Assembly (NCBI GenBank): GCA_002269645.1 | Contig: NIVC01000010.1 | Span: 186,001-250,000 of the forward strand | Source of the DNA: Macrostomum lignano | Taxonomy: Eukaryota | DNA: 64,000 bases | Reading direction: 5' to 3' | In this document: positions 10,640-28,769 of the stretch, piece by piece | Layout: every line of letters starts with the position of its first letter | Numbering within the stretch: position 1 is the first letter of the stretch | The notes under the pieces: model-generated | Databases searched by the model: none | Told to the model about the DNA's origin: nothing | The model's input: only the letters and a program-made list of their open reading frames with translations | Made by a program: the position numbers and the translations under genes

Positions 10640-13600
10640 ATGGCGATTGCTGGATTGCGCTCTCGTCTGGTCTGGCTGATTGGTAAGTTGGTGTCTGTCT
10701 GTCTGTCTGTGTGTGTGTCTGTCTGTCTGTCTGTCTGTCTGTCTGTCTGTCTGTCTGTGTGTCTGTCTGTCTGTCTGTCTGTGTGTGTGTGTGTCTGTCT
10801 GTCTGTCTGTCTGTCTGTCTGTCTGTCTGTCTGTGTGTCTGTCTGTCTGTCTGTGTGTCTGTCTGTCTGTCTGTCTGTCTGTCTGTCTGTCTGTCTGTCT
10901 GTCTGTCTGTCTGTCTGTCTGTCTGTCTGTCTGTCTGTCTGTCTGTCTGTCTGTCTGTCTGTCTGTCTGTCTGTCTGTCTGTCTGTCTGTCTGTCTATCC
11001 ATCTATCTATCTATCTATCTATCTATCTATCTATCTATCTATCTATCTATCTATCTATCTATCTATCTATCTATCTATCTATCTATCTATCTATCTATCT
11101 ATCTATCTATCTATCTATCTATCTATCTATCTATCTATCTATCTATCTATCTATCTATCTATCTATCTATCTATCTATCTATCTATCTATCTATCTATCT
11201 ATCTATCTATCTATCTATCTATCTATCTATCTATCTATCTATCTATCTATCTATCTATCTATCTATCTATCTATCTATCTATCTATCTAACTATCTATCT
11301 ATCTATCCATCTGTCTATCTATCAACCACTTGGTGCTATACTGGTGACCTAAAGATGCAGGTCACTATCGATTTTGTAGATATTAATTATTTATTTCTTC
11401 CCCCACTCCTATCATAAATCAATTAAAAACCCATAACGCATCGATAGATTTTAATCAGGCGCTTTTGTTTCGAACATTGCTGAAGTTCAAGCTATCAAAG
11501 GAATTATTACTTTGCTGAATTAAAGTCCGGATTACAGGCTAAATTTCTCACCAAAAAATCGATAACCAAAATGTATGAAGAAAGTAAAATGAATTTTCGG
11601 TGGCACTTCGGTTAGGTTAGGTAGTGCAAACATTTTCTGTCGTGTGCCCATGCAATCACGCTTGGGATCTGGCTGTGCAGTTGAGATTAATCGGGTATTA
11701 CTAAGAAACGATTGCTTGTTCTTTTCACCGTTCAGATTTATGATTAATCTGGTGAAGAGATTTTATATTGCCACGCCAATAGGAGATGTTATAGGCAGGC
11801 ACGCTCTGGTCAATGCTGATAAACCCAGGCCCTCTTCAATGAGCTATACTTTTGCTGAGGGTCGGGTGGGAGAGTTTCTGTTGGATAGCTATTTGGATCC
11901 AGTAGTGCTGTATGCCATTTACAGTAGTGCTGTATGTCATTTACAATAGTTCTGTGTGTCATTTACAGTAGTGCTGTATGTCATTTACAGTAGTGCTGTA
12001 TGTCATTTACAGTAGTGCTGTATGTCATTTACAGTAGTGCTGTATGCCATTTACAGTAGTGCTGTATGTCATTTACAATAGTTCTGTGTGTCATTTACAG
12101 TAGTGCTGTATGCCATTTACAGAAGTGCTGTATGCCATTTACAGTAGTGCTGTGTGTCATTTACAGTAGTGCTGTATGTCATTTACAGAAGTGCTGTATG
12201 TCATTTACAGTAGTGCTGTATGCCATTTATAGTGACTGTATTACTTTAGAGACCTTTCAAGTCTCTCGAGAGTTTTTAAAGATTACTTTAAACGTTTATA
12301 TGGCGTGGCAGTGCAGTGAGATCGTCTCCAGCTATTTTATACCGAAAGTAGTTGTAAACAAAGTTTTACAGTCCCGCTCTCATAATGCACATATGATCTA
12401 ATTCGATTTTATTGACTATATTTCAGTTCTATATCAAGTCAAAGTATCCCTAAGCGTCGTAACGACAGGCAATTTCGAAAAGTCAAACCTGCTTGTGACA
12501 ACGATTATGGTAATAACTGATGATTTATTTGGATTTTTTATTTGCATTAATTAGCGTATTAATTGGCACTTTTTTATGGCTGACAGCTCAGACCATTTAT
12601 TTTAAATTTTCCTTTTAAAACCGGACTAACAAACTCGAATTGAAAAACTCGGATTAGCAAACTTGGATTAACAAACTCGAATTGAAAAACTCGGATCAGC
12701 AAACTCGGATTAGCAAACTCGGATTAGCAAACTCGGATTATCAAAAATTCGGATTAGCAAACTCGGATTATCAGAAATTCGGATTAGCAAACTCGGATTA
12801 TCAAAAATTCGGATTAGCAAACTCGGATTATCAAAAATTCGGATTAGCAAACTCGGATTATCAAAAATTCGGATTAGCAAACTCGGATTATCATATTTCG
12901 GATTTGCAAACTCGGATTATCAAAAATTCGGATTAGCAAACTCGGATTATCAAAAATTCGGATTAGCAAACTCGGATTATCAAAAATTCGGATTAGCAAA
13001 CTCGGATTATCAAAAATTCGGATTAGGAAACTCGGATTATCAAAAATTCGGATTAGCAAACTCGGATTATCAAAAATTCGGATTAGCAAACTCGGATTAT
13101 CAGAAATTCGGATTAGCAAACTCGGATTATCAAAATTCGGTTTAGCAAACTCGGATTATCAAAAATTCGGATTAGCAAACTGGGATTATCAAAAATTCGG
13201 ATTAGGAAACTCGGATTATCAAAAATTCGGATTAGCAAACTCGGATTATTAAAAATTCGGATTAGCAAACTCGGATTATCAAAAATTCGGATTAGCAAAC
13301 TCGGATTATCCAAAATTCGGATTAGTAAACTCGGATTAATCAAAAATTCGGATTAGCAAACTCGGGTTATCAAAAATTCGGATTAGGAAACTCGGATTAG
13401 CAAATCTAGATTTAAAAACTTTAGTAAGTTAATCTTAAGTAAAAAAAGAGCAAACTATTTGATCACAAACCCAATCGCCAGTCCGAAGGCTTCTCAACCA
13501 AGGACATCAACGGACGCTGGGTCGGCTTCTACCCCGAGATTGTCGGCGAACTTTCTCGTCGACTAAATTTTCAAGCCACCTTCAAACGCGTGAGCGACGG

Positions 13601-27700: not shown

Positions 27701-28769
27701 AGATAGATAGATAGATAGATAGATAGATAGATAGATAGATAGATAGATAGATAGATAGATAGATAGATAGATAGATAGATAGATAGATAGATAGATAGAT
27801 AGATAGATAGATAGATAGATAGATAGATAGATAGATAGATAGATAGATAGATAGATAGATAGATAGATAGATAGATAGATAGATAGATAGATAGATAGAT
27901 AGATAGATAGATAGATAGATAGATAGATAGATAGATAGATAGATAGATAGATAGATAGATAGATAGATAGATAGATAGATAGATAGATAGATAGATAGAT
28001 AGATAGATAGATAGATAGATAGATAGATAGATAGATAGATAGATAGATAGATAGATACATAGATAGATAGATACATAGATAGATAGATAGATAGATAGAT
28101 AGATACATAGATAGATAGATAGATAGATAGATAGATAGATAGATAGATAGATAGATAGATAGATAGATAGATAGATAGATAGATAGATAGATAGATACAT
28201 AGATAGATAGATACATAGATAGATAGATAGATAGATAGATAGATACATAGATAGATAGATAGATAGATAGATAGATAGATAGATAGATAGATAGATAGAT
28301 AGATAGATAGATAGATAGATAGATAGATAGATAGATAGATAGATAGATAGATAGATAGATAGATAGATAGATAGATAGATAGATAGATAGATAGATAGAT
28401 ATGTATAGATAGATAGACAGCAGACAGATAGACAGCAGACAGATAGACAGCAGACAGATAGACAGCAGACAGATAGACAGAAGACAGATAGACAGCAGAC
28501 AGATAGACAGCAGACAGATAGACAGCAGACAGATAGACAGCAGACAGATAGACAGAAGACAGATAGACAGCAGACAGATAGACAGCAGACAGATAGACAA
28601 CAGACAGACAGACAGACAGCAGACAGATAGACAGCAGACAGATAGACAACAGACAGACAGACAGCAGACAGACAGACAGCAGACAGACAGACAGCAGACA
28701 GATAGACAGCAGACAGATAGACAGCAGACAGAGAGACAGCAGACAGATAGTATTCCACTTACCTGCCAT
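18762..28769 (-). CDS. Ionotropic glutamate receptor-like protein B, ~553 aa, no amino-terminal domain; paralog of A
   Basis: Hand-traced exons (minus): 28769-28763, 26251(or 26257)-26172, 24153-23923, 21942-21558, 20275-19452, 18896-18762; 1662 nt. Signal peptide [20 protein letters not shown] then [15 protein letters not shown]. Further motifs: [105 protein letters not shown]4 [16 protein letters not shown]. Confidence 0.9.
18981..19430. repeat. (GTCT)n microsatellite
   Basis: Read directly; last intron of iGluR-B. Confidence 0.96.
20445..21495. repeat. 31-bp minisatellite GTTGGTCACAGGTTCTTGAGGATCCTCAAAA (contains palindrome TTGAGGATCCTCAA), grading into a related 30-bp unit
   Basis: Read directly; iGluR-B intron 4. 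Confidence 0.94.
21951..22143. repeat. (ATTG)n microsatellite
   Basis: Read directly; next to the iGluR-B exon 4 acceptor. Confidence 0.96.
22248..22561. mobile_element. MITE-like element with 75-bp terminal inverted repeats, in iGluR-B intron 3
   Basis: 22248-22322 matches the reverse complement of 22487-22561 with 7 mismatches in 75 bp. The interior is ~165 bp with no convincing ORF. No clear TSD. Confidence 0.6.
24168..26045. repeat. 11-bp G-rich minisatellite (GAGACTGGGGT)n with internal higher-order duplications
   Basis: Read directly; iGluR-B intron 2. Confidence 0.95.
26269..28750. repeat. ~2.1 kb (GATA)n followed by a GACA/GATA-type tract
   Basis: Read directly; fills iGluR-B intron 1. 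Confidence 0.98.

Follow-up and report, generated by a model that had tools for sequence, protein, structure and literature searches.

The question raised by a 64-kb stretch of the genome of the flatworm Macrostomum lignano (contig NIVC01000010.1; referred to here as the window) is whether two neighbouring genes, A and B, encode members of the ionotropic glutamate receptor (iGluR) superfamily that lack the amino-terminal domain (ATD), and what proteins of such compact build might do. The two genes form a convergent pair, and each of them specifies a signal peptide, the S1 lobe of the ligand-binding domain (LBD), M1, a pore loop, M3, the S2 lobe, M4 and a short tail. Manual reconstruction from the DNA gave seven exons and a product of 554 aa for gene A on the plus strand, and six exons and a product of 558 aa, or of 553 aa via alternative in-frame acceptors, for gene B on the minus strand. 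The introns of both genes are of the GT..AG type throughout and have compatible phases, and the exact splice junctions at the start of S1 are ..NLLVTTIM/SEGF in A and ..NEVRVGIIE/AEGF in B (the slash marks the exon boundary). The exon chains put forward in a preliminary description of this DNA, with their coordinates, junctions and sizes of ~554 and ~553 aa, could thus be reproduced. GenBank BOX15_Mlig015393g1 (P0001, 558 aa), deposited as a hypothetical protein, shares 97% identity with the product of gene B, which also matches a MetaClust entry at 100% over 79% of its length; for the product of gene A, a UniRef entry from M. lignano reaches 96% identity. We found no paper on these Macrostomum genes and none that names Mlig015393 or Mlig002294. 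The general picture that emerged is that A and B are well-supported flatworm members of a known and widespread short kind of iGluR. What follows carefully annotates an ordinary member of a gene family and does not describe a new receptor type; the conserved A/B gene pair is one interesting extra.

Absence of the amino-terminal domain

Pfam searches gave the same outcome for A and B: Lig_chan-Glu_bd (PF10613) and Lig_chan (PF00060) were found above the gathering thresholds, together with SBP_bac_3, and there was no match to ANF_receptor (PF01094) at E <= 0.1. Presence of the first two domains and absence of ANF_receptor in both genes is what had been predicted for such a scan. When N-terminal segments of 400 aa from 67 long relatives were compared with the window by tblastn, only exons for the LBD and the transmembrane domain (TMD) were matched. 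A hidden Markov model (HMM) of the ATD was built from 48 relatives and recovered 12/12 held-out ATDs in a control, with E values from 1e-23 to 1e-102; run against all reading-frame segments of the 64 kb in six frames, it gave a best E value of 12 and thus no ATD.

The gene structures themselves are just as informative. In gene B and in its paralogs P0003 and P0007, one and the same exon encodes both the signal peptide and the initial strand of S1, so that no ATD can be spliced between them. In a further paralog, P0004 (529 aa), a methionine and a signal peptide stand directly before S1; its source is L001, an intronless 1863-nt RNA-type contig from a sequencing run. As the 68 nt upstream of the P0004 start contain no in-frame stop, completeness of P0004 is not proven by L001 alone. 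The introns between signal peptide and S1 consist to 55-93% of tandem repeat, which agrees with the earlier statement that they are mostly repeat, with no ATD exons noticed in them. Hidden ATD exons were rejected on the basis of the blank tblastn and ATD HMM searches and the single exon for signal peptide and S1. The sequence that the window offers upstream of gene A is only ~10.6 kb long, 9.4 kb of which is satellite. Taken together, the absence of PF01094, the blank ATD profile in 64 kb and the signal peptide abutting S1 uphold the claim that A and B are ATD-less.

Ligand-binding pocket and channel core

Among solved structures, the best matches were LBD-TMD chains of the AMPA receptors GluA1 and GluA2 (phmmer, E ~1e-35, residues 38-461). 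Pocket residues were read from the HMMER structure alignment and from a 13-sequence MAFFT alignment. Both A and B keep the equivalents of GluA2 Y450 (GRYG), P478 and T480 (APLT), G653-S654-T655 (GGST), E705 (MEAP in A, MESP in B) and Y732 (SYA), both have the S2 cysteines equivalent to C718 and C773, and the equivalent of R485 is invariant in 13/13 aligned sequences. P0007 too carries the equivalents of Y450, P478, T480, G653-S654-T655, E705 and Y732. All of the motifs that had been singled out beforehand (APLTxxxxR, GGST, ME[A/S]P, SYA and the S2 cysteine pair) are therefore present, and an intact GluA2-type pocket for alpha-amino acids, G653 and T655 included, is confirmed for both genes. 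R485 and the acidic residue at 705 anchor the amino-acid backbone, and G653 and T655 are associated with glutamate binders (Ramos-Vicente et al. 2018, PMC6307864). Since the latter two are kept, we infer that A and B would count as glutamate-type binders by the residue rule of that study.

An AlphaFold2 (AF2) model of P0001, calculated from a 6-sequence alignment and used for topology and a coarse fold match only, has helices at residues 155-178, 222-233, 245-277 and 472-517, where M1, pore helix, M3 and M4 are expected, and a Foldseek search with this model returned AMPA LBD-TMD chains (E ~1e-21 over ~465 columns). The topology is also evident at the sequence level, as M1, P and M3 of both proteins align to GluA2 and a hydrophobic M4 can be recognised. 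The sequence of the pore loop is STGC[Y/F]QG, and position 590 is occupied by S in A, where the acidic residue is lost, and by E in B. The segment from the P-helix to M3 is 63% identical between A and B and ranks among their best conserved parts. A and B have long M1-P loops of low complexity, which P0007 does not possess, and an extra segment of ~15 residues before M4 occurs throughout the Macrostomum family.

Short relatives and phylogenetic position

An HMMER scan of 1.84 billion representatives placed the Macrostomum paralogs at scores of at least 238 bits, followed by a sharp fall to at most 165 bits. The best matches outside Macrostomum are 27-33% identical, and many of the next-best ones are proteins of 450-530 aa that align from their N-terminus and, where named, originate from gastropods, a chiton, bivalves, a cuttlefish, nemerteans, a copepod and a hemichordate, e.g., Aplysia XP_005107294.2 (501 aa), a Haliotis 'glutamate receptor U1-like' protein, Tubulanus XP_074659201.1 and Glandiceps XP_077997159.1. 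'Glutamate receptor U1-like' is the name that NCBI automatically assigns to some of the mollusc relatives. In a word-indexed search, the top non-Macrostomum match of A was a fish protein (P0012, 463 aa) resembling kainate-binding proteins (KBPs), and a word-indexed protein search with the family profile retrieved only the four known Macrostomum entries and no homolog from any other flatworm.

For a comparison of relatives, six members of the Macrostomum clade were left out of a 141-sequence alignment, which leaves the 135 nearest relatives. Proteins of <=560 aa that align from the N-terminus were counted as short (n=47), the others as long (n=88). R485 is kept in 47/47 short and 88/88 long proteins, and position 705 is E or D in 45/47 and 88/88, respectively. 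R485, T/S480, T/S655 and E/D705 occur jointly in 32/47 short and 78/88 long sequences. The picture is different for the channel: the Q/R site is W in 20, L in 12 and Q in only 4 of the 47 short forms, compared with Q in 58/88 long ones, and of the nine residues of the SYTANLAAF motif the short proteins keep a median of 3-4, compared with 9/9 in 54/88 long proteins. With 47/135 relatives short and 32 of these equipped with the pocket, an ATD-less build with the pocket preserved and both pore and gate altered emerges as a recurrent and widespread pattern, to which A and B belong. The premise of the preliminary description that a missing ATD is rarely combined with an intact pocket has to be abandoned in view of the same numbers, the 32 proteins having all four core contacts.

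In a neighbour-joining (NJ) tree, A, P0007, B, P0003 and P0004 form a clade with the Logan protein P0016 at 99% bootstrap support, in agreement with the notion of a duplicated and diverged lineage. This Macrostomum clade is nested among 35 exclusively short proteins, although with bootstrap values of just 2-20%. Short forms drop out of large classifications because their SYTANLAAF motif is degenerate. Ramos-Vicente et al. (PMC6307864) excluded sequences with <4/9 SYTANLAAF residues, a cut-off by which A and B would be filtered from that classification. The words Platyhelminth, Schmidtea, Macrostomum and ATD never occur in the main text of Ramos-Vicente 2018, and short forms are not mentioned in Greer 2017.

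A second copy, a paralogous pair and selective constraint

The same convergent A/B pair is present at a homeologous locus on a second M. lignano scaffold (L002, NIVC01001569.1). Mapped exons are gap-free between the window and L002 and share 96-99% nucleotide identity, compared with 91-94% for unique intronic and intergenic DNA. Exon 1 of gene A found no match in L002, and exon 1 of gene B, with its 7 nt, is below searchable length in this comparison. The reading frames of A and B are intact in both copies, and the Nei-Gojobori dN/dS ratios against L002 are 0.18 for A (dS 0.053) and 0.15 for B (dS 0.093); intact frames and ratios of this size indicate purifying selection on both genes. For the same reasons, pseudogene status was rejected. 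Direct transcript evidence comes from the B type only (the GenBank model and the contig encoding P0004), and an exact look-up for a transcript record of P0007 was negative.

A related arrangement is found on scaffold L003 (NIVC01001306.1), where P0003, a B-type gene, lies on one strand, tail to tail with the A-type gene P0007 on the other. Assignment of P0007 to the A type is based on 65% identity to A and 100% bootstrap support; P0003 is the nearest relative of B (45% identity), cross pairs reach 38-42%, and B and P0003 have a C-terminal SF..L..SD.QQ motif and several local motifs in common. An independent inverted duplication at each locus was rejected, as identity between A and P0007 (65%) greatly exceeds that between A and B (38%). 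The simplest history is that of a single convergent A/B unit duplicated en bloc. The idea that A and B form a heteromer thereby gains indirect support, because a convergent pair of an A-type and a B-type gene exists at this older paralogous locus as well. The two types diverged unequally: in the S2 lobe, A and P0007 share 81% identity but B and P0003 only 34%, and pocket positions 653/654 are altered exclusively in the P0003/P0004 branch (NSNT, NSST). Such asymmetric divergence resembles that of a conserved partner and a variable specificity subunit.

A gene of the amiloride-sensitive sodium channel family (PF00858, 710 aa) occupies positions 1-3896 of L003 on the minus strand, upstream of P0003.

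Proposed function and competing explanations

We consider it probable that A and B constitute a compact, ATD-less pair of the iGluR superfamily that acts as an amino-acid sensor or receptor with a non-canonical pore. The clamshell would bind L-glutamate or a similar free amino acid. More tentatively, A-type and B-type subunits may co-assemble, and the A type might be the conserved partner while the fast-evolving B type might set specificity. The complex would then serve as an amino-acid sensor or receptor, and its pore, if it conducts, should behave unlike those of AMPA and kainate channels because of its aromatic apex and the rewritten M3 gate motif. A bolder version, in which an ancient, co-inherited A/B unit is an obligate heteromeric amino-acid receptor (with a conserved, co-receptor-like A and a fast-diverging B for specificity) within a bilaterian-wide, unclassified ATD-less class that keeps the pocket, has an aromatic pore apex and includes the vertebrate KBPs, appears doubtful to us; if it were true, M. 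lignano, for which transgenesis and RNA interference are available, would become the first genetically tractable model for that class.

Several observations weigh against our proposal. The SYTANLAAF motif is replaced by TYSGGFLCA in A (1/9 residues kept) and TYAAGFLCA in B (2/9), and the equivalent of the Q/R site is an aromatic residue, Y in A and F in B. Gate and Q/R site together imply that the proteins may not conduct at all, and going by sequence, A and B may give no conductance. The designation as receptor channels in the preliminary description is thus valid insofar as both proteins are iGluR-superfamily members with M1-P-M3-M4, but the channel label overlooks the altered gate and Q/R site. 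With a mean pLDDT of 59.5 from 6 sequences, the AF2 model has to be rated as low-confidence. No transcript-derived A-type protein is on record, where UniRef holds gene predictions only, and no gene has been called for the A homolog in L002. As to the history of the pair, the NJ bootstraps join B to the A type in 51% of cases and to P0003/P0004 in 33.5%, and with its placement split in this way the en-bloc duplication of the pair is parsimonious, not proven. The high S2 identity of A and P0007 could result from gene conversion instead of constraint. Finally, a convergent neighbourhood does not imply co-expression.

The main rival explanation is that A and B are non-conducting proteins that bind glutamate or other amino acids and work as ligand buffers, scaffolds or auxiliary subunits in the manner of KBPs, which we regard as possible but rather unlikely. 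It draws on the KBP architecture and size of A and B, on the coexistence of an intact pocket with a degenerate gate (1-2/9) and a pore apex occupied by a bulky aromatic side chain, on the 47 short relatives, which typically show such a combination and have W (20) or L (12) at the Q/R site in many cases, and on the automatic NCBI name 'glutamate receptor U1-like' for some of them. However, M1, the pore helix, M3 and M4 have all been kept under purifying selection, and 63% identity between A and B from the P-helix to M3 is unexpected in a vestigial pore. Less probable still is a role as chemosensory tuning subunits of the protostome ionotropic receptor (IR) type, which would need a co-receptor similar to IR25a or IR8a and respond to environmental chemicals and not necessarily to glutamate. 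The host is a protostome, the proteins are ATD-less and belong to a lineage-specific expansion, IRs are by definition iGluR variants lacking the ATD (PMC2924276), and a 513-aa protein of Schistosoma mansoni with the same Pfam content, found in miracidia, was published as an IR (PMC5080760). On the other hand, A and B do not exhibit the loss of at least one of R, T and D/E that would be expected for IRs (PMC4890853), only a signal peptide precedes S1 compared with ~200 aa in most IRs, and the best sequence and fold matches are of the AMPA type.

That the two genes are artefacts or decaying copies, i.e., mis-assembled exon chains, pseudogenes or genes with ATD exons beyond the window, is very improbable. 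It is true that the A type is without a transcript-derived record, that several database models at these loci are chimeric (P0002, P0006, P0010) and that the window extends just 10.6 kb upstream of A. These points are outweighed by intact open reading frames (ORFs) in two copies, gap-free exons and dN/dS ratios of 0.15-0.18; moreover, at least four paralogs start with their own signal peptide before S1, in three of them within a single exon, the transcript-like contig L001 agrees, and there is no ATD signal in six frames.

Should our preferred reading of A and B as an amino-acid sensor or receptor be true, an iGluR would be able to assemble and work with only LBD and channel domain and with a rewritten gate, in a regenerative flatworm amenable to transgenesis, and there would be an experimental handle on the many short iGluR relatives of invertebrates and fish. 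The conserved A/B pairing would provide a simple and testable hypothesis on subunit partnership.

Gene models and surrounding sequence

The features of the A/B locus are collected in Table 1. The start of gene A is the first ATG downstream of an in-frame stop, and the phase of exon 1 suits exon 2. At the 3' end of gene A, exon 6 could alternatively be read through to a stop at 16098, which would give a product of 561 aa. Gene B has tandem in-frame acceptors at 26251-26257 and 18896-18905; GenBank model P0001 uses the upstream one of each pair, and the MetaClust model takes the downstream acceptor for the last exon. The paired acceptors allow isoforms of 553-558 aa.

Table 1. Features of the convergent gene pair; positions refer to the 64-kb window, and a slash separates exon and intron letters.
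Feature	Positions	Strand	Description
Gene A exon 1	10640..10682	+	ATG and start of signal peptide, phase 1; donor G/gtaagt
Gene A exon 2	12427..12509	+	Remainder of signal peptide and first S1 strand (..NLLVTTIM); acceptor tttcag/, donor ATG/gtaata; 97.6% nt identity to L002
Gene A exon 3	13482..13760	+	S1 lobe (SEGF...GRYGS...APLTLNAVR...) with Y450, P478, T480 and R485 equivalents; Pfam Lig_chan-Glu_bd E 2e-20
Gene A exon 4	13898..14040	+	End of S1 and M1, by alignment to GluA2 M1
Gene A exon 5	14524..14750	+	Long Gly/Ser/Asp-rich M1-P loop and pore helix; Q/R-site equivalent Y
Gene A exon 6	15188..15987	+	M3, S2 lobe (GGST, MEAP, SYA, Cys pair), pre-M4 insert, M4; 98.1% nt identity to L002
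Gene A exon 7	17122..17211	+	Probable C-terminal tail and stop; donor AAG/gtaatc, acceptor ctttcag/; also in database prediction P0009; 97.8% identity to L002 vs 92-94% for flanking DNA
Spacer between A and B stop codons (tail to tail)	17212..18761		1.55 kb; ~93% identical to L002 spacer
Gene B exon 6	18762..18905	-	C-terminal tail and stop (...ELA*); alternative acceptor 9 nt downstream (18896); C-terminus of P0001 agrees
Gene B exon 5	19452..20275	-	M3, S2 (GGST, MESP, SYA, Cys pair), pre-M4 insert, M4
Gene B exon 4	21558..21942	-	End of S1 (VTALR...), M1, Ala/Ser-rich loop, pore helix; Q/R equivalent F, position 590 E
Gene B exon 3	23923..24153	-	S1 (AEGF...GRYGA...AAAPLT)
Gene B exon 2	26172..26257	-	Signal peptide and first S1 strand in a single exon; alternative acceptor 26251, 6 nt downstream
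Gene B exon 1	28763..28769	-	ATGGCAG (M, A, phase 1); donor G/gtaagt; same start as GenBank model P0001
TATAAAT box	28825..28831	-	~60 nt upstream of gene B ATG; read directly, presumptive function

Public predictions for the A and B loci include chimeric entries (P0002, P0006, P0010, P0005). In one type, a receptor gene is joined to the antisense strand of its convergent neighbour (entries of 832 aa and 664 aa), and in the other it is joined to unrelated upstream sequence (797 aa; one entry is named 'calpain catalytic domain-containing'). It would be a mistake to read additional domains from such entries.

A 9.4-kb satellite takes up the left part of the window (1-9433), where a unit of 31-33 bp, ACACTTCAGAATGCGCTTATTTGATTGAGAC, is repeated in ~294 copies at 95% match; the satellite continues past the left window edge and ends ~1.2 kb upstream of the gene A start codon. 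Tandem repeats dominate introns and spacers across 10692-29946 and 30588-61244, with micro- and minisatellites filling most of the introns of A and B and also those of neighbouring genes. Examples are a 2.3-kb (GATA)n run at 26270-28597 and a 1.9-kb run of an 11-mer at 24168-26049; further runs consist of TGTC, TCTA, GTGA and TGAT. Gene B spans 10.0 kb in the window and 5.4 kb in the 97%-identical L002 copy, and repeat length thus differs greatly between the two copies. Intron 3 of gene B (21943-23922) differs from the other introns in that ~1.8 kb of its sequence is largely unique; both strands carry several short ORFs, and there is no ATD signal. This intron may be the remnant of an old mobile element.

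To the right of gene B, a 239-aa ORF without a Pfam match (40696-41412) lies upstream of an ORF on the plus strand (42511-43095) with a Pfam match to TEX33 (testis-expressed sequence 33 family, E 1e-14). The ORFs within 40696-43095 are probably parts of one plus-strand gene, oriented head-to-head with gene B across ~12 kb. A multi-exon gene for a P-type cation ATPase with repeat-filled introns extends on the plus strand from 46900 to 64000 and past the right window edge; Pfam matches are E1-E2_ATPase, Cation_ATPase, Hydrolase_3 and Cation_ATPase_C, and the enzyme is probably of the plasma-membrane Ca2+-ATPase type. Two long stop-free frames, at 32834-35473 (plus strand, 880 aa) and 37051-38844 (minus strand, 598 aa), consist purely of tandem repeats of 14-20 bp and 12 bp and were rejected as genes because they are ORF-like repeat artefacts.

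Comparison with known systems

AMPA receptors (GluA1-4) provide the best sequence and fold matches and agree with A and B in LBD-TMD topology, pocket residues and the S2 disulfide; A and B differ from them by the missing ATD, a gate with 1-2/9 motif residues and an aromatic residue in place of Q/R. Bacterial GluR0 has no M4 and a K+-channel-like filter, whereas A and B have M4 and the pore loop given above.

IRs are protostome iGluR variants that lack the Pfam ATD and in most cases have ~200 aa before S1 (Croset et al. 2010, PMC2924276). In studies on molluscs, IRs and iGluRs were told apart by the loss of R, T or D/E (PMC4890853). A and B share with IRs the missing Pfam ATD and the lineage-specific expansion, but R, T and E are retained and the ~200 aa at the N-terminus are missing. 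From a flatworm, S. mansoni, Liang et al. 2016 (PMC5080760) described an 'IR' of 513 aa, with expression in the free-swimming miracidia, that contains PF10613 and PF00060 only and has three transmembrane segments plus a pore. Going by this published description, it is similar to A and B in length and identical in PF10613/PF00060 content; it was filed as an IR with 'remnants' of motifs, in contrast to the complete R/T/E set of A and B.

The vertebrate KBPs of frog, chick and fish, among them Xenopus XenU1, are ATD-less proteins of ~45-60 kDa with M1-M4 and an intact agonist pocket, and they bind agonist with high affinity without producing homomeric currents. A and B are likewise ATD-less, of similar size and endowed with M1-M4 and an intact pocket; identity to KBPs is only 25-28%, and the Q/R site of the fish protein is L and not F or Y as in B and A. 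The short iGluRs of invertebrates also lead from the signal peptide straight into S1, followed by M1-P-M3-M4 with a degenerate SYTANLAAF motif and a hydrophobic or aromatic Q/R site; the pre-M4 insert is specific to the Macrostomum genes, and the long low-complexity M1-P loops set A and B apart. In architecture and residue pattern, A and B match the widespread KBP-like short relatives of the iGluRs and not the insect-type tuning IRs.

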